A stretch of DNA of 64,000 nucleotides, taken from the NCBI GenBank assembly GCA_038496445.1, contig JALMLS010000596.1, positions 186,001 through 250,000 on the forward strand, in the 5' to 3' direction. The DNA comes from Trichosphaerium sp. ATCC 40318 (Eukaryota > Protista > Tubulinea). A model generated the notes under the pieces. It was not told the origin of the DNA. It saw only the letters and a program-made list of their open reading frames with translations, and did no database searches. The position numbers and the translations under genes were made by a program. Positions 18,079 to 54,827 of the stretch are shown piece by piece; the stretch's first letter is position 1, and each line of letters begins with the position of its first letter.

Positions 18079-20008
18079 ATGACAAGTGGACAGAACATCG
18101 TTATTTTACTTCTGTGTTTGGTTCTCGCACTAGTGAGCTCGCACAATGAGGGAAACAGAGTATTGGTACTCCTTGACGACCTCTCTCAACAGCATTCGTA
18201 CTCTATCTTCTTCAACTCACTAAAAGGTACCGCAACTCGCTATTTGATAGCGTCCCACACTATAGAATGCCCTCAAACAATCAATTTGTAGAACGCAACT
18301 ACGCACTCTCTTTTTTTAAAGCAGATGATGCTTCCCTTGCACTAACAGAATACGGGGAGTACTTATACGATCACCTTATTATTTTTTCACCAACAGTTGA
18401 AGGTACCACGTCACAAAATGTTTTTTTATTGCTTGGTTTGTAACCGTAGCGCAGAATTTGGTGGATTAATCGATGTACCATCTATTCTTGACTTTATCGA
18501 TGACGGCCACAACGTTCTTGTTGCCGCAAGCAGTGAAGTCTCTGACTCAGTAAGAGAAGTAGCAAGCGAATGCGGTGTTGATTTTGATGAGGAAGGAAGC
18601 TTCGTCACTGACCACCTCAACTATGATGAAAATGACCCACTTCAAACCCACAACGTACGTAGAGAATGACGTGGCACAAAAACAAAGTTTTTTTGTTTTT
18701 CGAAAGCAAATTTTTTTTCAAAAACAATTTGACGTAATAAAACCTATATTACAAGCCTCTATACGCTTAAATAAAGGCGCACGTTTGACCGAAATGTTAC
18801 CAGGTGATTGTTGTTGACCCAAAATCTTTGGACAAACTCAATGACGTTATTGTATCTACCAAAGCAATCAAGAAGCCAATTGCTTGGTCTGGTATTGGCG
18901 CTGACGCCGAAGGTACGTCACAAAACGAAATAAAAAAAAAATTAAATTAAATCGTTGACTTTTTACGACTAATGTATTCACGACACTCAACCACGTTTTA
19001 GGTTCTCTTACTTTCCCTCTATTGAATGGCGCTGAAACATGCTACTCTGCTGTACCTAACAAGGCCATTTCTGGTGAACCTCACACCATTGGCACAAACA
19101 CTGTTCTCGTTTCTGCTCTACAAGCTCGTAATAATGCGCGTGTTATTGTATCAGGAAGTGTTTCATTGTTTTCTGATAAATATTTCAACCAAAAGGTTAA
19201 GAAGTATGGTGGCGTTGAAACGTACGTTCAAGTGTTTACACGTATTTTTGGATTTTTTTTGCGGTTCTTTTTCAACTCTCTTTGCGTTGACGCGCTTTGG
19301 TTTCGACGAAGCGTTGCTGTTTGCTTTTTTTTTCATACTGATTTTTGGTGTTTTAGCGAAACTGCCAACAAGGAGTTCTGTGTTGAGCTTTCCAAGTGGG
19401 TATTTAAAGAGAAAGGTGTCCTTAAGGCTGGTAACTTGACACACAAATTGGTTGGAGATGATGCTCGTGAGTACCGTATCAAAGACGAGATTGTATGTTA
19501 ACATTTTTTCTCTTTTTTTTAATTTATTTTCACTGTCGCTAAAAAGTTTTGTAGAGCTTCAGCATTGAAGTACAAGAGTACAAGAAGGGTTCTTTCGTTC
19601 CATTCGTTCTCAAAGACACCATTCAAGTTGAGTTCACTATGATTGATCCTTACGTAAGAAGCACCCTTGATGTAAACAAAAAGGGCCGTTACTCCACCCA
19701 ATTCAAAATCCCAGATGTATACGGTGTCTTCACCTTCCGTGTTGAGTACAGTGCTCGCGGTTACACTGGTTTCACATTAGAAGAGCGTGTTCCAGTTAGA
19801 CCATACAGACACGACGAATTCGAAAGATTCATCCCTGCTGCGTATCCTCCAAGACGACTTTTTTTTTTCTTTTCTTGTTTCTTATTTTATTCTTATTACA
19901 TTTTGTGTTGTTCCTTGACTTTTTATAAGATTCCCTTACTACGCTAGTGCATTCTCTATGCTCGCTGGATTATTTGTATTCTCTGTAGTATGGCTCTACG
20001 GCGCTTAA
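18079..20008 (+). CDS. DDOST: Oligosaccharyltransferase 48-kDa subunit (OST48/WBP1)
   Basis: Signal peptide, [79 protein letters not shown] and a C-terminal TM segment. Confidence 0.97.
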
Positions 20009-26467: not shown

Positions 26468-26469
26468 TA

Positions 26470-27213
26470 TTGTCTGTTTCATTCAAGTTTTACTAATATT
26501 TTCTAGAAAGTGAATTTTTAGCACTTTTAGCAGATCTAGCAAGATCTGACACTTCTATCAAATGGTGTAGATCTATGACAATGTGAACTATTTGTGTTAC
26601 AACGTCCTTCATTGTATGACTTAGGTACCTTACGGTAAGTGATAGCAAAATTTTTAATGTAAGTTTCAACATCCCATGGGATGATCGCAGCATTTTACCT
26701 ACGCAAACTATACACAGTACGATCAAACCACAGAAGTCTAAAAGCGAATTAAAAAGGTATGATGTCCTACAAAGCTATCGCATTACCGCCAAACACGGTA
26801 TGAATGCCTCAAACACTGTTTGCTGTATGTTTTGCTTCAAAAAATCAACGTATGTGTATAACTTACTAGCGCCTACCCCACGCTAACAGAAGCGCTATGG
26901 TAGCATCCAAGCAGCAATGAAGGTGTAACAACGTCAAAACCGCCCCAAAACACCACCAACGTTGCTATAGGCTTTGTAAACGCCGCTAGGCATCAAATAT
27001 GTAAATAAAAAAGTTTGCTCTGGGGTTTGTTAAATCACGTGGGTTTGAAACGTTTGGATTCACTGGACAGGCTTGAGGGTAGATCACATTTAAAAAATGA
27101 CAATTTGCAAGATCTGTCAGAAGTGTCAAATCCGTCAGATCTGACAGATCGGGCAGAAACTGGGTTTTTTTGCTAAAGGTCAGTCTGTCTGAAAACTTGA
27201 ATGAAACAGACAA
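26470..27213. mobile_element. Non-autonomous TIR DNA transposon (MITE-like, 744 bp), TA target-site duplication; copy 1
   Basis: Left end TA|TTGTCTGTTTCATTCAAGTTTT and right end AAAACTTGAATGAAACAGACAA|TA (22-bp perfect TIR). Subterminal AGATCT and TGACACTTCT motifs occur at both ends. No transposase ORF. Confidence 0.9.
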
Positions 27214-27459
27214 TAGTAAACAAACTGTTTATTCGAGTGGCTAAATATTATGATTATTCAATTTTTCTGCTAGTACACCAGAAAGCAAATGGACTTATAC
27301 GCATGAGCATAATATGAAAAAAAAGGAGATAATATTTACTAACTTTTACTAGAAATATGAACACTCAGTTAGTTTGGTATCTATTATTACCAGCGTAAAA
27401 TCCAACATACATTGGATAAATAAGAACAAAGAAGAATAGAGTACTGCTTTGTTCTCATT

Positions 27460-28476: not shown

Positions 28477-29559
28477 AAGATAGTTTTCGGTTGAAACAGG
28501 TTGTTTGCGTATTAAATTGCCAATTACATCAAGAGCGCTTTCATAGACACTCTACGGAACGTAAGTAAGTCGGCTATTGTTTAAAACTGTTACCATTGTA
28601 CTCAATTTATCTGAATGTGACTGTAAATAGAGTATTTGTGAGTTATGTGTAAAGGCGTGAGAGACAACGTGTTTATGGCTTTTAAGAAAGACCTTGACTG
28701 AGGCATTTCCGCTAAAATTCGCAGAACACAAGTCTTGTTTATCTTCCATCTATTTTCTTAAATTAGTAAGTTACTATGTATATCGCTGCTGTATTGTTAC
28801 ACACATCGCATATGGGAACTAGAATAGAAGTAAGGCATTATTGTCTGTTTCATTCAAGTCTTACTATTATTTTCTAGAAAGTGAGTTTTTAGCACTTTTA
28901 GCAGATCTAGCAAGGTCTGACGCTTCTGTCAAATGGTGTAGATCTATGACAATGTGAACTATTTGTGTTACAACGTCCTTCATTGTATGACTTAGGTACC
29001 TTACGGTAAGTGATAGCAAAATTTTCAATGTAAGTTTCAACAGACCACGGAAGATGATCGCAGCATTTTACCTACGCAAACTATACACAGTACGATCAAA
29101 CCACAGAAGTCTAAAAGCGAATTAAAAAGGTATGATGTCCACAAAGCTATCACATGTCCGCCAAACACGGTATGAATGCCTCAAACACTGTTTGTTATGT
29201 TTTGATAAAAAAAATCAACGTGTATAATAATTTACTAGCGCTACGCTGGCCTACCCCACGCTAACAAAAGCGCTATTGCAGAATCCAAATAGCAATACAG
29301 GTGTAATAGCGTTAAAACCTCCCAAAACACCAGCGTTGCTGCTTTGTAAACGCCGCCAGGCGTCAAATATGTACATAAAATTGTTTGCTATGGGTTTGTT
29401 AAATCACGTCAGTGATTTTTTACGAGCAGTACATTTACAAAAATAAAGCTATCTTTCTAACCAGCTGGCGCATATTTTGACTCCCCCAATGGATCCCATA
29501 ACTTATAATTATATTCTCACGATGCCAGTTACACCTGCAACAACCAACAAACATCTCAA

Positions 29560-29760
29560 AAAAACTGTGTTCTTGACAGCAAAAAATAGTTACAAGTGAT
29601 AGTATTTACCTCTTGGAAGCTTGGGATTTTGAAGGTGTAATTGCAGGCGCAACAGTAGATACAGCATTTGGTATTGCGGTTTGCGTGGTTGTTTTTGGTG
29701 CCATTGATGGAGAGGTGTTGGCGTTATTATTGGCTTTATAGTTCTATTATAAACCCATCA
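29560..29760 (-). pseudogene. Fragment of a Thr/Pro/Ser-rich stalk exon captured inside the element
   Basis: Reads NNANTSPSMAPKTTTQTAIPNAVSTVAPAITPSKSQASKR, followed by a GTAAAT donor. No upstream exons were found. Confidence 0.45.
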
Positions 29761-30195
29761 ATAAAGAGTTTGCAAGCAGACTTAATTTCTAATTTACTAT
29801 ATGACACAAGTCATGTTGGGTGCTATAATTACGTACTACACCAGTACTGAGTATTGCTTCATCGAACAAAAGGGAATAGAAAGGTAGCATCTTACATGTT
29901 TTTTAGATGAACGCTTTTTATGAGCCTGCCTCTTATTTGAGTTAGGACCACAAGAGCTTTTTAATTGTCATTTGCTATGAGGAAAAAATTTGCTGTTTAA
30001 TTAAATAACGGTAACTAACACGTGATAATTTTAACTTAGCAAGATTACGTTGAGCTACGTACAGTCTCAAATTAAGGAAAAACTTGAAGGTGAGAATGAA
30101 GAGGAGAGAAATAGACAAAGGGTAAATACTAAACTGAAAAAAAACGAAAAGAGTGTGAAAGGGGCTTTATTAAAGCACTTTAGTAACATATGTAT

Positions 30196-30942
30196 TTAGC
30201 TACATGCACTACAATCGCCGTTGAGAGGTAGAACAACACTTGCAGTAGTAAGAGGGTGGATATCAGCAGTACCTTTCCAACAGAAATGAAAAGAGTTAAA
30301 GATTTTAACTTCGGAGAAATTCCAGCCATCATGACCGAATATTGTCATCTCAACACCTTGAAGTGCCTTGTCGGTATTCTTTGAAGGTGCGACCATATAG
30401 AACAGATCAACAGCACCTGATTGAAACTCGTTGAGTCGGGGATCAACAAGGGCAGCGCTGTAAGGAGAATAGGTTCCGTCAGTGTAAGCATATCGGTACT
30501 TAATTGGTGCATTTGTTCCATGGAATTGCCCGTTGTTCGTCTTTGTCATTATCATTGTGTATTCGCTAGTAACCTTCTCATATGTATCTCCAGATGCTTG
30601 ACTATAAGTGTTTGAACAGCTGGTCATGTAGAATAAGTTGCATATACTTCCGTGGTAGGATGTGTAGTAATTACAGCGGTCGTCTGCATTACATAGTTGT
30701 TCACATTGAGCTTTTGTAACTGAAGTATCTCGAGGGAAGGAACAGTCTCCAGGGCCGCCAACCCAATTGCAGTTTGTTACCGTTGATCCGGGCACAGAGC
30801 CATCACAGTACACAAATTGTCCGGCATGCATGTCTTTACGACAGCCAGAACAAGTGTTGTGGGCGTTGAGAGTAATGGCTTTGTAATTGAAGGCCAATGC
30901 CAATGAAAAACAGAGACAGAGTAGAATCGATGAATAGTTCAT
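30196..30942 (-). CDS. Intronless secreted protein with Cys-rich PAN/apple-like and PLAT/LH2-like domains (cargo of TIR element)
   Basis: Signal peptide, TKAQCEQLCNADDRCNYYTSY (PAN-like) and NEFQSGAVDLFY...GHDGWNFSEVKI (PLAT-like FExGxxDxF / DGW). Confidence 0.8.
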   Translation of the reverse strand: MNYSSILLCLCFSLALAFNYKAITLNAHNTCSGCRKDMHAGQFVYCDGSVPGSTVTNCNWVGGPGDCSFPRDTSVTKAQCEQLCNADDRCNYYTSYHGSICNLFYMTSCSNTYSQASGDTYEKVTSEYTMIMTKTNNGQFHGTNAPIKYRYAYTDGTYSPYSAALVDPRLNEFQSGAVDLFYMVAPSKNTDKALQGVEMTIFGHDGWNFSEVKIFNSFHFCWKGTADIHPLTTASVVLPLNGDCSACS

Positions 30943-33244
30943 GAGTGGAGGGGCTTGTACGCAAACTAAAGCTGTTGTTTGTTGTTTGAAGGTTATTGGT
31001 AAATGATCAACAATGTTGGCTTAAAAGCACGTGTGCACGAAAAAAAAAATAAAGCGAAACCAACAGCAATGTCGCCGTATGAAAAAAACAACACAGGAAA
31101 ATGTGCTGGTATTTACAAACCAAAACAGAAAAAAAGTCCAACCTGTCGGGTTAATGTGATTTATTTTATTTATGATCAAATATCGCCAAATACGAAACGC
31201 ATGGATGAGTTTTGGGTTGTTTTGGTGTTTTTTACTTCCATTCCACATGTGTTCAGTGAACTATTGATTTAGAAATAATTTCGCTCCTTCTACGACCCGA
31301 ACCAGTTCACTTCTATGAACGACATCTGTTTAGCTATTAAAAAAATTGTTTGAAAACAGTAACAAGCTCCGGAGTACAAAATGGGCCTTGCTTTCTCAAA
31401 ATGAAAAAAAAAACAAACAAGATTGTTAAAGTTTTTTCGCTACACTTTTGTAGTACCCATCCTCATTGCAAGTGCATGAAAGGTTAGACCCTTATGACTT
31501 CAGTAATTTATAGGGTCTTTAATAGGCACAGGGCAGTGTCAATCTCAGAAAAAAAGCCATAACTCAACTCTTTTTTATTGAAATCAAATTGATTATCATT
31601 TGTGTAGACTGGTGTTTTGTAGTAATAGCTGTTACAAGTCATCGCAGTATATGTGCACTTCGCCTTGAAGTATTTATACATATTCCGGTTGTTAGAAAGG
31701 TACAGGGATCGCTCTCTCTCTAGTGTCAGACAGATCGCAGTATCACAAGTTGCAGTATGAAGTTTTCATTAAAACTACTTTTCCCACACTCTTGAGATAA
31801 ACCACTGTAGTTGTATAGTTGCTATACCGCAACTAAAAACAATGAAGCAGTGATTAAAACATGTGATTCAGAAGAGAGTGCTTGCTAAACAACGCAGTCA
31901 CTCTCATACTTGATAGGCACTTCCAAATTTCAACCCATCATAAACTGTTGTATGTTCCTGTCCTCACATCATTCTTCATTGTTAATACCCACTACAGCGG
32001 GCGCATGTCGCTTTGGTAGGTAACAGGGCTACATTCTACCGAAGTAATATGTATCACAAAAAGTTTAGTTAAACCATCTGTGCAACACTTTTTTATTTAA
32101 AAACTAGCGTGTAACTTGATGTGGCTCTAATGTCTCTTCGTTGGTGATGCTCGCCAATAGGTGTTTGATTAACTAGCTTGCGCAAGAGAAACTACTAATA
32201 TGTATCACCAGCGGATTGCCATAGAACCTAGCTGTGACAGCTCATTGCCAATAGCCTACATACGTATTTTTTCATCCAGAGCTCACTTATTTCAATACAC
32301 GCCTGTAGCATTGACGGATGTACTCACAAATTCATTCATACAGCACTTGCTTGAAAATCATAGCTACTATAACGTGACATAGCGGAGGAAGGTAGTCTTA
32401 GTCGTAGTTTCCTCGCTTTTCGGTTGATAAAAAAAACGGTTGTTATCTTTAGATTAAAATGGTGGCACCTACCTAAACCTGGACCCAAAGCAAAACCGAA
32501 TACGGTTACTAGTATACAATCACTATGATGTCACTTTCTTTCATTTTTCAAACCAACGGAACAAAAAAGTTGTAATAGCGTGCGTATAGTATCATTGACG
32601 CACAGTGCTGCATAAAATACGGTTTAACAGATACTTTCTCGTAAGTTGACAATCTGCATTTTTTTTAATTGTGCTAAACACGCTTGATTGTTGGGTTTCA
32701 ACCCGTCAATCGATTCAAAATCAAATGTTACAGCCATTTAGAGGGTTTAGAACTCTTGAAAAGCAGGTGATGGCGAAGAAAACACCAATCAATTTTTTTA
32801 CAACTTCATTGAAGCAAACTCCAGGATCGCCTTGAATAATATGAATGTATTTGAATAAATACAAGGTTTTTTGTTGTGAATATGAATTTGCCGTATATTC
32901 GTATTGGAAGAACGTTACTCTAGAGCCATTTTACTACCCAATCAAGTTGTTTAACGCCAAAATAAGCTTGATCGAATGTAGTTTTTACGGTAAACATGGT
33001 CTTTTCATGAAAACGAAAATAGTAAAACAGCTTTATCCGTTTCATTTTTTTTTCAAATGTAGTACGTGCCGATTTGAAACGGTTGGATTCACTCGACAGG
33101 CGTGAGGGTGCTCACATTTAAAAAATGACAATTTGCAAGATCTGTCAGAAGTGTCAAATCCGTCAGATCTGACAGATCGGGCAGAAACTGGATTTTTTTT
33201 GCTAAAAGTCAGTCTGTCTCAAAACTTGAATGAAACAGACAATA

Positions 33245-33590
33245 CACGTCATGTGATCCAAAAAATGGACAGATGAGTTTGGTAGTTAATTCGTGCTTGA
33301 TAAGCGAGAAGGAAGCGAAGGACATCAACACTAAAATTGATGTCTATGAGACATGGTTTGCAAACGGTCAGTTGAGATGTTGTAGGAATTTAGTAAACAA
33401 AACTTAATAGAGGTGAGAGTGGTGTTTAAATGGTAAATAACAAAGGTGTATAATTATATGCATGGTAGACTACAAGGAGAACAGAAGCTGTTGCATGATA
33501 ACGGACAATTTACTTTAACGTATATTATCATAGATGGCAAAAAGCGTAGTAAGCCTAGATGGGTTCGTGATGGCCGAAAACAATACTCAT
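33245..33590 (+). pseudogene. Decayed MORN2-repeat gene adjoining the right TIR of element copy 2
   Basis: KNGQMSL..., YETWFANGQLRCCRNLVN* and GRLQGEQKLLHDNGQFTL, with stops and frameshifts. Confidence 0.7.
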
Positions 33591-33848: not shown

Positions 33849-34292
33849 TCAAACATACTCAATAGCCCAAGTACTATCGAGTGTATCTCCATTGTTTGGC
33901 TCAAGAAAAACCCGTTGAGCGTGGCTAGCACCAGGTCCCCCATCAAGCGCATGTCCTGAACGAGTAATACGCTTATTTATACCCCAGCCTGTGTTTTCTA
34001 GGGTGAACCTTTGTCTGTTGTTTAATGAATCGCACCAAGCTAGCTTTACAATTTGCCCAGGTGTTGCTTCCATACACCTCCCTGAGGCGACATGTTCAAA
34101 CCTGAAGTAGGTTCCCCAGCTTTGCATATCCCACACTGTTGGTCCGTAAAAGCTTGGCATCAAGTGTACATAGTTTGAGTTTGGAAACGATGATAGAGCA
34201 AACGTGGTTCGAAATTTTATAATCTTAACATTAGCCGAAGCACAGAGGGTAACAAGACATAAGATACATAGAAGAAGAGAAGCTGTTTGCAT
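33849..34292 (-). CDS. Secreted ricin-B/beta-trefoil lectin-like protein, paralog L1
   Basis: Signal peptide plus about 130 aa with FRFEHVASGRCME...VKLAWCD...RQRF...W; intronless. Confidence 0.8.
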   Translation of the reverse strand: MQTASLLLCILCLVTLCASANVKIIKFRTTFALSSFPNSNYVHLMPSFYGPTVWDMQSWGTYFRFEHVASGRCMEATPGQIVKLAWCDSLNNRQRFTLENTGWGINKRITRSGHALDGGPGASHAQRVFLEPNNGDTLDSTWAIEYV

Positions 34293-34429: not shown

Positions 34430-35235
34430 AATAGACATGCAACGTAGTGTTTCGCCTAACTATCATATTTTCGGACTTTATCTGAATCGATACCTGACGT
34501 AAACCAAGTCGTAGATTTTGTATCGTAGTGCTCAGTACAGCAAGAAACAACTCCAAATAAGAAACCATTTTGTGAATACTTTTCAGCTGGCGACGTTTCG
34601 AAACCGCGAAAAACGGTTTACAATCACGTGTTTCTAAAAACCATTAAAATATCAACATGTTGTTAAAACGTGATTCTAAAATAACGCGAACTATAGATCA
34701 CAATAGGTCAAATATCGTGGTAAAACAACAAAGCGTATAGCTAACAATCAGCGAGTATTTTCAAAAGCTAGTTCGGTTTCCAGCGCACAAGGCAGTACCC
34801 ATCCATTGAATCTTTTTTTAAATTGTTCCCTCCCGGATGAAGTTTGCTCTTTTAGCCAGAAGTGTTAACATAAACCTATTTTTATTTTGGAGGTACAAAT
34901 CAGTACACCCTGGAATAATATAAATCTATCCTACTTGGTGTTGTCAGCGTTTGTGTGTATGGTAGAAGATGTAAGGTGAAGATGGTATTTGGTTTGTTAC
35001 CAACACAAGAATCATGTTTTAACAATGTGTTTATATTTTAATGGTTTTTAGAAACACGTGATTGTAAACCGTTTTTCGCGGTTTCGAAACGTCGCCAGCT
35101 GAAAAGTATTCACAAAATGGTTTTCTTGTTTGGCGTAGTTCCTAGCAAGCTGTACCACGTGCAAAGCTTTGTCGGGTATCGTTTCAGATAAGTCCGAAAA
35201 TACAATTAGGCGAAAATACAACGTTGCAGGTGTTT
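34430..35235. repeat. Inverted repeat (arms about 34430-34677 and 35008-35235) between divergent lectin genes L1 and L2
   Basis: GAAACCATTTTGTGAATACTTTTCAGCTGGCGACGTTTCGAAACCGCGAAAAACGGTTTACAATCACGTG at 34561 is reverse-complemented at about 35055-35123. Confidence 0.9.
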
Positions 35236-35579: not shown

Positions 35580-36032
35580 ATGATGCGAACAGCTTCTCTT
35601 CTTCTACTCGTATTATGCCTTGTTACCTTATGTACTTCGGCCAGAGTTAAGATTATTAAAATAGGCACCACGTTTGCTCTATCGTCTCTTCCAAACTCAA
35701 ATCATGTTTTTTTGATGCCAACCTTTTACATTCCAACAGTGTGGGATATGCAAAGAGTGCCAAACACCAATCTCTTCAAGTTTGTAAATATCGAAACAAG
35801 GTACTGTATGGAAGTAGCTCCAAACCAAGTTGTATTTCTGGCTCTTTGCGATGTATCAAAGAGCGCTCAAAGGTTCTCGCTTATAGATACTCGCTTTGGT
35901 GGTAAGCGTATTACTAATCTAAACTACGTAATTGATGGTGGACGCGGAGCTAGTCACGCTGAGCGTGTTTATCTAAAGCGATACTGGGATAGAGATAATA
36001 TTGATATCACTTGGATAATTGATTATGTTTGA
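35580..36032 (+). CDS. Secreted beta-trefoil lectin-like protein, paralog L2
   Basis: FKFVNIETRYCMEV...VFLALCD..KSAQRF; homologous to L1. Confidence 0.8.
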   Translation: MMRTASLLLLVLCLVTLCTSARVKIIKIGTTFALSSLPNSNHVFLMPTFYIPTVWDMQRVPNTNLFKFVNIETRYCMEVAPNQVVFLALCDVSKSAQRFSLIDTRFGGKRITNLNYVIDGGRGASHAERVYLKRYWDRDNIDITWIIDYV

Positions 36033-36817
36033 CATGTACAACAATAAAACCATTCCCTAGTATTTTAATATAAATTGTGTAGACTTCATTCTTGATACCC
36101 TGTGGTTTTATTGTTGCATGTGACTGCACGTTGCAGGTTTACTTGTTGTTCATCTGTTCATCGTGTTAAAGTTGTATTACTAAAGCGTTGGTTGTATACC
36201 AGCAATAATCAAGTAAACTGGCTCGCCAGGTCATGATAGTTCTGAATATACAGTGTTGTCCACATCTTGTTTTGTTTATAGCAAGTAGGCTATCTTACAC
36301 AGCAATACAAGCAATGTAATATGGTAACAATCCAAATACCATTTTCCTAGCTGCATATTCAACATCATGGTATGTACTCAGGAACAGAAACGGCAACAAT
36401 GAGTTAGCACGTGATAAAATAAGTACGGCCTTGAACCCCAAAACCAAAATTGGTTTTATGTTAACACTTTTTCATGGACTGATGTAAACTGTACAGCGGT
36501 GCATGTAACACAACTAAATGTATTGTTGTTTTTAAACTGTGTACTGGCAAAACCAACTTGGTTTACATGATATCAGGTTCATTGTTTCTATGATTTGAAA
36601 TCCAATCACATTGACAACGTCGGGTATCTATTCAGATAAATTCCGAAAATATGATAGTTAGGCGAAACGCTACGTTGCATGTCTATTTAGCAAACTCATT
36701 GGATTGAAGTATTCAATCACATTGAACACAGAACGCAAGATAACAAAAACACAAGCTAACAATTGTGTTTTTTTGGTCAAAGCACAAAAAAAGCGAATAA
36801 AACCCTGACTCAACACA

Positions 36818-37270
36818 ATGCGAACAGCTTCTCTTCTTCTGTGTATCTTATGTATTGTTGCCCTCTGTGCTTCGGCTCATGTCAAGATTATAAAATACCA
36901 AACCACGTTTGCTCTATCATCGTTTCCAAACTCGGATTATGTACACTTGATGCCAACCTTCTACGGACCAACAGTGTGGGATATACAAAGCTGGGGCAGC
37001 GGAGGATGGATCAGGTTTGTACATGTCGCCTCAGGGGACTGCATGGAAGCAGTACATGGGCAAATTGTAAAGCTGGCTCTTTGTGATATATTGAGCTATA
37101 AACAGAGGTTCACACTTGAACAAAGCGGGTATGGGGCAAGCTATGGTCGTATTGCTCGTCTGGGATACGCACTAGATGCAGGACCTGGAGCTATCCACGC
37201 TCAGCGCGTTTTTCTTGATCCAAACAACGGAGATACAGTCGATAGCACTTGGAAAATTGTTTATCTTTAA
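36818..37270 (+). CDS. Secreted beta-trefoil lectin-like protein, paralog L3
   Basis: IRFVHVASGDCME...VKLALCD..YKQRF. Closest to L1, and shares its upstream sequence (about 34352-34500 inverted vs 36615-36765). Confidence 0.8.
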   Translation: MRTASLLLCILCIVALCASAHVKIIKYQTTFALSSFPNSDYVHLMPTFYGPTVWDIQSWGSGGWIRFVHVASGDCMEAVHGQIVKLALCDILSYKQRFTLEQSGYGASYGRIARLGYALDAGPGAIHAQRVFLDPNNGDTVDSTWKIVYL

Positions 37271-37660: not shown

Positions 37661-38113
37661 ATGATGCGAACAGCTTCTCTTCTTCTATTTGTATTATGCC
37701 TTGTTACCTTATGTACTTCGGTCAGAGTTAAGCTTAAAAAGATAGGCACTAATTACGCTCTATCAGCTATAACGAATTCGGACTATATTTATTTGATGCC
37801 AACCTTTTACATTCCAACAGATTGGTGGATGCGAGACTATGGTACATACGTGAAGTTTGAAAATATTCACGCAAAAAAGTGTATGGAGGCATCGTTTGTA
37901 CTACAACGTGTTATTCTGGGAGATTGCGATGATTATAACTTTCGCCAAAGGTTCGCACTTGATGATAGCCGTTGGGGTGAGCAATATAAGCGTATTAATC
38001 ATGTGTACAACTATGTTGATACAGGACCTGGAGCTAGGCAAGCTCAACAGGTTTATCTAAAGCGGAACAGAGTTCACACAGCCGATAACACTTTTGAAAT
38101 TGTATACGTTTGA
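37661..38113 (+). CDS. Secreted beta-trefoil lectin-like protein, paralog L4
   Basis: VKFENIHAKKCME...VILGDCDDYNFRQRF. Upstream region about 37375-37660 duplicates about 35275-35580 of L2. Confidence 0.8.
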   Translation: MMRTASLLLFVLCLVTLCTSVRVKLKKIGTNYALSAITNSDYIYLMPTFYIPTDWWMRDYGTYVKFENIHAKKCMEASFVLQRVILGDCDDYNFRQRFALDDSRWGEQYKRINHVYNYVDTGPGARQAQQVYLKRNRVHTADNTFEIVYV

Positions 38114-40980: not shown

Positions 40981-42405
40981 ATGTCTTTCAATAATCAATG
41001 TACGATAGTGCCCTACTGGGTTTCTTCTCATAAGTATTTAGGCACGCCTTTAAACCTAGAATCGCTTCCTTGTGATATACAGGTGTATATTAGCAGCTAT
41101 TGTAGCGAAGTGTTCGCTAAATGGTACGTTTCTTTTTTTCAAAAAAAATGTGACAGAGCGATAGGAACTTGTTGAGCAAATCTACTGCGACATCAACTCG
41201 CTACAATGAAAAGCTTAACAAAACCGGCGTTTGGTTGAAATGGCATTCAAACGGTAGATTGTCAGATAGTAGACACTTTGTTGATGGTATCGAACATGGA
41301 GCTTTACAAGTTTGGTTTGAGAATGGGCAAACAAGAGAAAAGTCTTTCAAAGAAGAAGGTTTGTTCGAAGGTGAAATAAAAACATGGTATGCCTCCGGAC
41401 AACTTGAATCACAGGGTTTCTATAAGTCTGGTAAGAAAGAAGGTACTTATAAGATTTGGCATGAAGGAGGACAACTCTACAAGGAAGCTATGTATTGTAA
41501 CAATGTACGTCATGGCTTGCTCCGTGAGTACTTTGAGAATGGGCAAATGGCTAGCTATGTGATGATTCAAAATGGAGTTGATAACGGCTTGGTTCACTAT
41601 TGGAATGAAGATGGACATATGATATTAAAGGGAACATTTGTGGACGCAAAGCCTGAAGGAAAGTTTGAAGAATGGTACACGTTACACTTTTTCCTCGTAC
41701 TTTCTTAACTTTGCTCTTTGCTTTGTATTTAGCTTAACCGTATGTAGGTATGACAATGGTAACCCCAAAGTATTGTGTTGGTTTTATTCGAACAAACGAG
41801 AAGGAAAGTTTAGCGAATGGCACGAAAATGGAGCAGTTGCGGTCCAGTGTAATTATGTTGATGAGGAATTTGATGGAGAATACAAAGCATGGTATTCCAA
41901 TGGTCAATTAGAAAAAGAGTGTACCTATGTAAAAGGAGCCCTTGACGGAGAACACAAGATGTGGTATGACAACGGTCAATTAAAGCACTGTAGAACTTAT
42001 GTCAATGGCAAACATGACGGTACTACCAGAAACTGGTATGCCAATGGTCAAATACAATTTGAGTGTCAAGTTGTTAATGATTTAAGACATGGTACTTTTA
42101 AGCGTTGGGATAAAAGCGGTGTTCTTCTTGAGGAGAGGAAGTATATTAATGGAGTCCAAAATGGTCTGTATCAATGTTGGTCATCAAGTGGTAGCTTAAT
42201 CCTCAAGTGCACTTATTTGGACGGACGGCAACATGGTAATTGCTTTCAGAGAACTAGCAATGGTTCTATTGAAAGTCATTATAAGCACGGTCAACTACAT
42301 GGTGACTATAAAGAAGTGAATGCAAAAGGTGATATTTTAAATGAGAGCAGTTACGAAAATGGTCAAGTAAAATCAAAGCCACTTAATTTTGGAACATGGA
42401 TCTAA
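40981..42405 (+). CDS. F-box-like + MORN2 repeat protein with about 3 introns
   Basis: LESLPCDIQVYISSYCSEVFAKWNLLSK...RYNEKLNKTG is homologous to the N-terminus of 27460-28476. Many WxxNGQL repeats follow. Confidence 0.88.
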
Positions 42406-43498: not shown

Positions 43499-44637
43499 AT
43501 GGCTGCACCAATACTACCTGGAGAGATAGTGTACCATATACTCGCGTTTGTAGATGATTTATACACAAAGTATGCTGTAGCGCTTGTATGCTCGTATTGG
43601 CGCACTGCCATAATATCTACAACAACGACAGTTGATGTTTCGTATCTTTGCCTAGATGGAGAAAAACACGAACGAATGGGAACTTTTCCAAGATACTCAA
43701 AATTGAGGTCTGTTTTTCATATTTTTAAAAATGTGGACACTGTTAAGGTACCCTTTTGGCTGTCAAAATACCTGCTTAAGTGTGTTAGCTTTGTGATATC
43801 ATTGTTGGCTTCAGAACATTCTGGAAACTGGGTAAGAAATTAGACAAGTTGTTGTGCAATTTTGTCTTTGATTTTTTTGTTTTGCATACTTGTTAACTAT
43901 TCTTTTTTGTTTCAGGATGTGCTGTGCTTTCAGGTAAATTAGATCTTGGAGAACGGATAGGGTTTGGTGCTTATCATGAGTACATGAGCCTTGCTGATCT
44001 TAAAACACAAGAATTCAATGATAGCCCAGAAGTACAAGGTATGCATGAGTGCTACTTTTTCAACCTTCTGTAAGCTTTTTATAATATTATTGATAGAGAT
44101 TCGAGCCACTGGATGTACGCCCATCACCAGTATAGTCATATCAGACTGTAATATAAAGTACTGGTATTGTATGTAGCACTTAGCAATGGTTTGGGGCAAA
44201 GTAAGTCTAACATTGTAATTATAGCCTCATGGCCATCTGTGATGTTTGCCGGAGTTACATTATTTAGAGCTTTGGCAACTAAGGATGCTGTATTTTCAGT
44301 AGATGTTTCAGGTTCTACTGGAGAAGGCTTGAAATATCTGTACAAGGAAGGATATAGTACGTTAATACAAATAATTGTATGCCTTGTTTAAGGTTTCTCC
44401 CTTTGTTTTTATTTCTTACCCTTTTGTGGCTTATATCGTTCACTAGAAGTATCACACCTTCCACTTTGCAATCTAGAAAAATGGACGTTGAACATGTCTG
44501 ATACAAACATACCAGAAGATGAAAAAAAAGGTGCGTAGAACTTTGCTTGGTTTTAACATGTTTTGACATGATTTTGTTCAGAAATACAAAGCATTATTCA
44601 TAGTTTACAGAAACAGGCATCACAATATCGGATTTAG
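43499..44637 (+). CDS. F-box protein with uncharacterised C-terminus
   Basis: ILPGEIVYHILAFV..YAVALVCSYWR is an F-box. Downstream exons were assembled tentatively. Confidence 0.65.
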
Positions 44638-54300: not shown

Positions 54301-54827
54301 ATGATTCAATATAATAGGCGTATAATATAAATGTATTATCAGAGTGCTTTTTTTTTTTTTTGGTTGAACGTTTCTAGTTTAAAACAAATTCTTGACACTG
54401 GACCAATCAAATAGATTTGAGCCATAATCAACACTCTCTTAAATAAGTGGGAAACTAAAACCCAGTCATAATTCTTGAAAGAAAATTCAATGAAACTTGC
54501 TTTTTCATTTCTTTGGCATTGTGATCATGCAGCCCGCAATTTTTTTCGTACGATTTTAGTTTGAGCATAAAAGGAGTTTGAAATTTCCTTCTCATGTGTT
54601 TCTCGGCCTATTGGCTTTGATCATGTGTAGTAAAAGTTAAGAATGGGTTAAACCCCAGGCAAGTGACCACGTGTCACTTTGTCTTTAACCCATTATTTGG
54701 AAAACTAATGGTGATTGACATTGCTTGCAATGTCAGTTCCCATACAGTGATTATCCTAGCATAGCACTACCCGCTAGAGTCATATTCACTTTTTTTACTG
54801 TATTTGCAACCTGTGAAGAAATCTCTT

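Follow-up and report, generated by a model that had tools for sequence, protein, structure and literature searches.

Organization of the locus

We analyzed a stretch of 64,000 nucleotides from the protist Trichosphaerium sp. ATCC 40318 (assembly GCA_038496445.1, contig JALMLS010000596.1, positions 186,001 to 250,000). This whole stretch is called the window below, and positions are counted from its first letter. It holds two copies of a short TA-flanked element with terminal inverted repeats (TIRs). Copy 1 is compact; in copy 2 the same two arms are separated by a long insert, and within that insert lies an intact, intronless gene. The two copies are separated by an intact open reading frame (ORF) of MORN_2 repeats, and copy 2 itself sits in a second, interrupted MORN-like frame. 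An earlier note, made from the letters alone, had read copy 2 as a cargo-carrying ('Pack'-type) transposon. The features are collected in Table 1.

Table 1. Features of the two element copies, the insert and the adjoining MORN-like frames (positions in the window)
Feature	Position	Strand	Remarks
Copy 1, 744-bp non-autonomous TIR element	26470-27213	+	TA at 26468-26469 and 27214-27215
Sole CACGTG of copy 1	27036-27041		Insertion in copy 2 falls at its central ACGT
Subterminal array of 9-nt units (AGATCTGTC, 4.6 copies)	27110-27150	+	Right arm of copy 1
Intact MORN_2-repeat ORF, 338 aa	27460-28476	-	Between both element copies
Interrupted MORN-like frame, upstream part	28776-28840	+	Continues at 33245-33407
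Copy 2, 4,402 bp in total	28841-33242	+	TA at 28839-28840 and 33243-33244
Copy 2, left arm, 569 bp	28841-29409	+	Final four bases ACGT (29406-29409), one duplication copy
Insert, 3,654 bp	29410-33063		Single copy in the window
Thr/Ser/Pro/Ala-rich open stretch, 45 codons	29609-29743	-	Ends at AG/GTAAAT; outside the 248-aa coding sequence
Intact intronless gene, 248 aa	30196-30942	-	ORF, homologues and transcripts
Copy 2, right arm	33064-33242	+	Second ACGT at 33064-33067; the 175 bp of 33068-33242 correspond to copy 1 from 27041 onward
Interrupted MORN-like frame, downstream part	33245-33407	+	Additional MORN-like pieces follow in another frame

Two copies of one element

A scan of the window finds the 18-nt end TTGTCTGTTTCATTCAAG exactly at 26470(+), 27213(-), 28841(+) and 33242(-). 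These four occurrences compare with 0.20 expected by chance, and none of 100 shuffles attained four. A TA adjoins every one of the four ends, thus both flanks of both copies, and with the TA counted in the inverted repeat of copy 1 is perfect over 24 nt. The TA behaves as a target-site duplication, though formally it could be part of the TIR. BLASTN aligns the left arms (26468-27040 against 28839-29409) at 88.9% identity over 584 columns and the right arms (27044-27215 against 33073-33244) at 94.8% over 173 columns. Without 29410-33063 and one ACGT, copy 2 measures exactly 744 bp and is colinear from end to end with copy 1, which means that no element sequence has been lost. The description given in the earlier note, of two copies that share one TIR and the same arms and of which the first measures 744 bp, is thereby borne out.

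The ends of the element are better preserved than its center. Between the two copies, the first 300 nt together with the last 100 nt are 96.7% identical, against 90.3% for the middle (Fisher p = 0.0005); the insert therefore lies in the part that is least constrained for movement. The four 18-nt ends have stayed identical despite an overall divergence of approximately 6-8%, for which the chance under even decay is about 0.06-0.1. The right arm of copy 2 has the same array of 9-nt units as copy 1 (at 33138-33178), and these arrays are candidate transposase-binding repeats. Such better-kept ends would be the pattern of a non-autonomous cut-and-paste family in which selection for mobility acts on the ends.

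The TA flanks, along with the shared TIRs, point to the IS630/Tc1/mariner group. Since the window gave no transposase, the superfamily assignment is made on TA and TIR only. No transposase family was found among the window ORFs of at least 95 aa or in the open pieces of the insert, which agrees with the earlier observation that the cargo contains no recognizable transposase. BLASTN of the region against the 64-kb window yielded only the two related pairs of arms and no third family copy. In JGI metagenome contigs, neither a 21-nt exact probe for the TIR nor a 24-nt one for the right arm found a match.

The insert and its borders

An ACGT stands at both borders of the insert (29406-29409 and 33064-33067) where copy 1 has a single ACGT. 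Copy 1 reads ..AAATCACGTGGGTTTG.. at 27030-27047. In copy 2 the left junction reads ..AAATCACGT followed by CAGTG.., and the right junction ..GTAGT followed by ACGTGCCGATTTG... The cargo had earlier been placed at the internal ACGT; the site stands, but it is better described as a 4-bp direct duplication of the center of the CACGTG in copy 1. An insertion falls on the only CACGTG of the element with a chance of approximately 1 in 744, and a 4-bp match would arise from a blunt insertion in about 1 in 100 cases by our own estimate. A 4-bp duplication without loss of element sequence fits a filled-in staggered break or an insertion of the transposase type. The absence of loss also argues against abortive gap repair with template switching, which usually deletes element sequence.

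Could the junctions be an artefact of the assembly, with flanks and arms of different family copies misjoined across a repeat? The arms are indeed repeated sequence (569 and 175 bp). However, sequence at the arm-insert junctions is unique, one arm supplies to the base what the other lacks and a single frame is restored when the outer flanks are rejoined, so that this explanation is hardly credible.

The hexamer at the insertion point is abundant. The window has 62 occurrences of CACGTG, where 11.7 +/- 4.1 would be expected (an enrichment of about 5-fold), and this is its commonest 6-bp palindrome despite a G+C content of 37%. Examples are found at 27036-27041, 30019-30024, 31028-31033, 34625-34630, 35156-35161 and 36408-36413, often upstream of ORFs; the one at 31028-31033 lies 86 bp upstream of the 248-aa gene. 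The CACGTG sites of the window share no extended flanking consensus. It is likely that CACGTG is a regulatory motif of the E-box/G-box type, which also marks the insertion site in copy 2.

The ends of the insert offer few clues to its origin. Their inverted similarity gives a local alignment score of 19, against a shuffle mean of 18. A pair of inverted ends picked out by eye (GTAC..ATTT..AAAAA..TAAAGCT) was rejected, as 103 of 300 shuffles score equally. Long direct repeats and a poly-A end are absent from the insert, and the ends of Helitron, long terminal repeat (LTR), poly-A, Transib-like and CACTA-like elements were each compared with the junction sequences and discarded, as none fits. Neither a further copy of the insert nor another cargo-bearing element is present in the 64-kb window. 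According to the earlier note, TIRs or a target-site duplication belonging to the insert itself would indicate a nested insertion after transposition. This is half of what we see: the insert has a flanking duplication of its own (ACGT), but no TIRs or other transposon ends and no transposon genes.

A duplication centered in a palindromic hexamer that is enriched 5-fold, clean insert edges and a wholly kept host element are what would be expected if the insert were a self-contained mobile gene cassette, of an undescribed and TIR-less kind, that targets CACGTG, duplicates ACGT and became nested in a miniature inverted-repeat transposable element (MITE). Nonetheless, the insert shows neither recombinase nor transposase nor any kind of terminal structure, is known from one instance only and apparently includes a truncated fragment of a neighboring gene (see below), as a random chromosomal piece would. 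We regard such a cassette as very improbable.

Read backwards, the ACGT picture also fits a deletion between two ACGT microhomologies, so that the direction of the event is a matter of inference. The long form would then be ancestral and the 744-bp copy 1 an internal-deletion product. Exactly such a pattern, with two ACGT around the additional 3.65 kb of the long form and a single one in the short form, results from a microhomology-mediated deletion. Internal-deletion derivatives are, moreover, common among DNA transposons and the usual origin of short non-autonomous elements. Against this, the long form has neither a transposase nor a remnant of one and must first have been a gene-capturing non-autonomous element, which requires an extra step. 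In addition, the deletion would by chance have to create a perfect CACGTG, a motif that is otherwise strongly enriched. Overall, we consider the reversed direction improbable.

The cargo gene

The gene carried by the insert is real and transcribed. One database match, an MMETSP transcript ORF called complete, is identical at 243 of 248 residues. Transcript contigs, all drawn from one RNA run, differ from the window at 1 of 368 nt over 30161-30528 and at 6 of 294 nt over 30499-30792; additional RNA pieces are approximately 90% alike. In our reading of the differences, the contig over 30499-30792 has two amino-acid changes that are not in the MMETSP ORF. Consequently there are at least three close variants of the gene (98-99.7%) and one more at 90%. 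The close variants may be alleles, strains or paralogues, which the data do not tell apart, and recent copying is one possible cause. The neighboring lectin gene and the MORN gene were used as a test of the strain from which the RNA came, and neither has a close match. The same run contains no RNA on the arms of copy 2.

The 248-aa protein begins with a hydrophobic, signal-like N-terminus, which is followed by a Cys-rich PAN/apple-like domain (residues ~28-121) and a C-terminal domain (~129-246). A full scan of 1.84 billion representative proteins yielded 27 relatives, most of which align to residues 28-121 and two to residues 129-246. The protein itself has no Pfam match at E <= 0.1 (PAN_4 reaches E = 0.43), but the N-terminal relatives carry PAN_1 or PAN_3 above threshold. 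The N-terminal domain is modelled with a predicted local distance difference test (pLDDT) score of about 90, and the best PDB matches of the model are apple/PAN domains, although weak (E > 0.1). A PAN/apple-like N-terminal half is thus supported through the homologues. The one large contig that carries a homologue (57.6% GC) belongs to an unrelated organism and has no DNA similarity.

The picture is different for the C-terminal half. Residues 122-248 have no sequence match in Pfam or PDB, and their structure model stays below a pLDDT of 50. PLAT/ATS3 clusters came up as a language-model feature lead at 0.77-0.79, which is under the reliability line of the tool itself; PLAT is therefore a weak lead. 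Of the intact, intronless PAN+PLAT secreted gene that had been proposed, the intact ORF is confirmed and PAN is recovered through homologues, while PLAT finds no match.

Other content of the insert

The Thr/Ser/Pro/Ala-rich open stretch (Table 1) resembles, by composition alone, the mucin-like stretches at 50-52 kb and 58 kb. A mucin-like gene fragment at this place is plausible but unproven: the open stretch and the AG/GTAAAT end of the 'mucin-stalk exon fragment' postulated before are both present, and its identity as an exon is what the composition leaves plausible. If real, it would be a truncated neighbor gene, as expected of a random chromosomal piece. The further decayed coding-like DNA that had been suspected found no support in searches of the insert. 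Short matches to the cargo gene around 32146-32263 raised the possibility of a second, decayed copy; this was rejected, as they are not colinear (E >= 0.06).

A stretch of 63 nt within the insert (32910-32972) matches the central part of a 505-nt RNA contig at 92% identity; the flanks of that contig are unrelated. The borders of the stretch show no splice sites, and it may be a short dispersed repeat.

The target site and the MORN genes

Removal of copy 2 and one TA joins 28776-28840 to 33245-33407 in an open frame with MORN-like motifs. If AT is kept instead of TA, the rejoined frame is shifted by 2 nt; as the earlier note had stated, an AT duplication does not restore the frame. A MORN paralogue aligned across the rejoined junction gives E = 0.12, with only 22 codons on the upstream side. 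The frame that had been predicted to reopen does so, and with these 22 codons and this E value it weakly supports a single insertion site with TA duplication for copy 2. Past 33407 the MORN-like pieces lie in another frame, which marks the locus as a pseudogene.

A gap of 300 bp separates the intact MORN_2 gene from the MORN pseudogene, to which it lies head to head. In the database, bacterial YwqK-type proteins (24-30% identity) come closest to the intact MORN protein, and the RNA run contains no transcript evidence for it. The region 41169-42405 holds additional MORN_2 ORFs, and 43499-43843 is an F-box-like ORF.

The two element copies, 1.6 kb apart and in the same orientation, bracket the intact MORN gene, and their outer ends form a valid pair. 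Because of this shared orientation, mobilization of the gene by the outermost ends is geometrically possible. The idea that these TIRs could mobilize an F-box-MORN gene thus retains its geometry, but Pfam finds no F-box in the ORF and no mobilized product was seen.

Other genes in the window

Four paralogues adjoin copy 2 at 33849-34292(-), 35580-36032(+), 36818-37270(+) and 37661-38113(+). They encode signal-peptide proteins of 147-150 aa, share 68-82% DNA identity, and three of the four weakly match ricin-B/CDtoxinA-type beta-trefoil lectins. The one at 36818-37270 was searched against the database and has no homologue there. That these paralogues (33.8-38.1 kb) are CACGTG-bounded cassettes was considered and rejected, as they are diverged duplicates without sharp borders.

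Further away, a full-length U2 spliceosomal RNA gene is located at 54595-54794(+) (Rfam RF00004, 67 bits, E = 5e-11); it contains a CACGTG at 54668-54673. Exons of OST48, the 48-kDa subunit of oligosaccharyltransferase, lie at 19022-19947(+), where the N-terminal domain is matched with E = 7e-19 and the middle domain with E = 4e-23. As a housekeeping gene, OST48 could anchor the taxon.

Discussion

Most likely, with a probability that we put at about 0.5, the insert entered an element copy that was already resident at the site, and the composite would only look like a Pack-type element. The 744-bp unit would be a non-autonomous cut-and-paste DNA transposon with TIRs of 18-24 nt, subterminal 9-nt repeats and TA flanks, and its copy 2 would have inserted into a MORN-repeat reading frame. 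A single event would then have added 3,654 bp of ordinary host DNA to the poorly conserved middle of copy 2, through a staggered break at the single CACGTG of the element that was filled in to leave ACGT on either side. The host piece would have brought along a complete, promoter-bearing, intronless gene for a secreted PAN/apple protein, flanked by approximately 0.8 and 2.1 kb. What we infer from the arrangement is that the break was staggered, that the event was an insertion and not a deletion, and when it took place with respect to the transposition. Given that both ends of the composite are intact, copy 2 would be a potential carrier, not a demonstrated one.

Several points weigh against a later insertion. 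From the letters alone, it cannot be told whether the cargo entered before or after the element transposed into the MORN frame. The identical 18-nt ends suggest that the family was active after the lineages split, so that a composite with intact ends could have moved. Recent copying is a possible source of the expressed, near-identical cargo-gene variants (at least three at 98-99.7%, in addition to the one at 90%). Finally, we know of no established mechanism for a TIR-less insertion of 3.65 kb with an ACGT duplication.

These points lead to the alternative of a true Pack-type, or transduplicating, element. Here the host segment would have been captured elsewhere, and a trans-acting transposase would have cut and pasted the 4.4-kb composite into the TA of the MORN frame. 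By its structure copy 2 fits the working definition of a Pack-type element (PMC8903248), albeit as a single instance: it has TIRs, a TA target-site duplication and host coding DNA between the ends, the latter recognized by PAN-domain homologues, transcripts and the lack of a transposase. TIRs and subterminal repeats are intact, a TA is present on both sides and the outer flanks rejoin as an open frame. Conservation of the ends above the middle, with four identical TIRs at ~6-8% divergence, implies selection for mobility; the cargo occupies the dispensable middle, and near-identical variants of its gene are expressed. There is also precedent, in the short and long forms of maize and rice elements, Pack-Mariner included (PMC8903248), and in a 46-copy ORF of Pyrenophora tritici-repentis (PMC3538342). 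However, TA flanks and a rejoined frame are equally expected if the cargo came after transposition, only one cargo-bearing copy is visible in the window, no donor locus is known and the window yielded no transposase having these ends. We hold this alternative possible, at less than even odds. The Pack-type label of the earlier note thus fits the structure, whereas transposition of the composite as a unit would be drawn from a single instance. That the family shuttles secreted-effector genes is not sustained: the window has no second cargo copy, and nothing bears on an effector role.

Comparison with known systems shows likenesses on both sides. In plants, rice Pack-Mariner included, one internal insertion distinguishes the long 'Pack' form from the short 'empty' form (Gisby & Catoni 2022, PMC8903248). 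Like these Pack-TYPE elements, copy 2 is non-autonomous, has the target-site duplication of its superfamily (TA), holds host coding DNA between its ends and exists beside a short form. In contrast, the cargo in plants usually consists of gene fragments, and many long-form copies prove mobility (PMC8903248); copy 2 carries a whole intronless gene with its upstream region, occurs in a protist and is known in one copy. It further differs by the 4-bp duplication at the cargo borders and by the element sequence that is wholly kept. Pipelines for Pack-TYPE elements (packFinder) discard singletons (PMC8903248).

The fungus Pyrenophora tritici-repentis has 46 copies of an ORF enclosed by Tc1/mariner TIRs, as well as hAT elements with histone H3-like genes (Manning et al. 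2013, PMC3538342). As in copy 2, a complete and transcribed ORF of cellular type lies within TIRs belonging to a DNA transposon (TA-type or hAT), but the fungal elements are multi-copy and near-identical, some with a transposase, whereas copy 2 is a single instance. The carriage of ORFs between Tc1/mariner ends is therefore already known, from rice and from a fungus. For the neighboring-insertion model of DNA acquisition, insofar as it is outlined in PMC8903248 (Catoni et al. 2019), the likeness lies in the two same-orientation copies (26470-27213 and 28841-33242) with a valid outer pair of ends; unlike in that outline, copy 2 has its cargo within a single element made of two exactly complementary halves, an arrangement for which the model makes no prediction. 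The later insertion that we favor shares with an ordinary nested insertion into a resident MITE the one split point, the flanking duplication of its own and the lack of loss from the host element. It departs from it in that the insert lacks the hallmarks of a known transposon class and carries a working gene of host type.

What the finding means depends on whether the composite moves. If it is static, it would represent a tidy and ordinary later insertion into a small transposon, the curious point being the ACGT duplication at the over-represented CACGTG. The bolder idea, that the TA/TIR family, or a CACGTG-targeting cassette riding in it, copies whole expressed genes for secreted PAN-domain proteins around the genome, seems rather unlikely to us. 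If true, with the arm-gene-arm composite present at several TA sites, it would mean that complete functional genes are transduplicated in an organism other than a plant or fungus, and a mobile composite would expand a family of surface or secreted proteins. Whereas plant Pack elements carry mostly fragments, a composite that moves would mean that DNA transposons duplicate a complete, promoter-bearing and expressed gene in a protist, and it would provide a means by which a family of secreted PAN-domain genes could spread.

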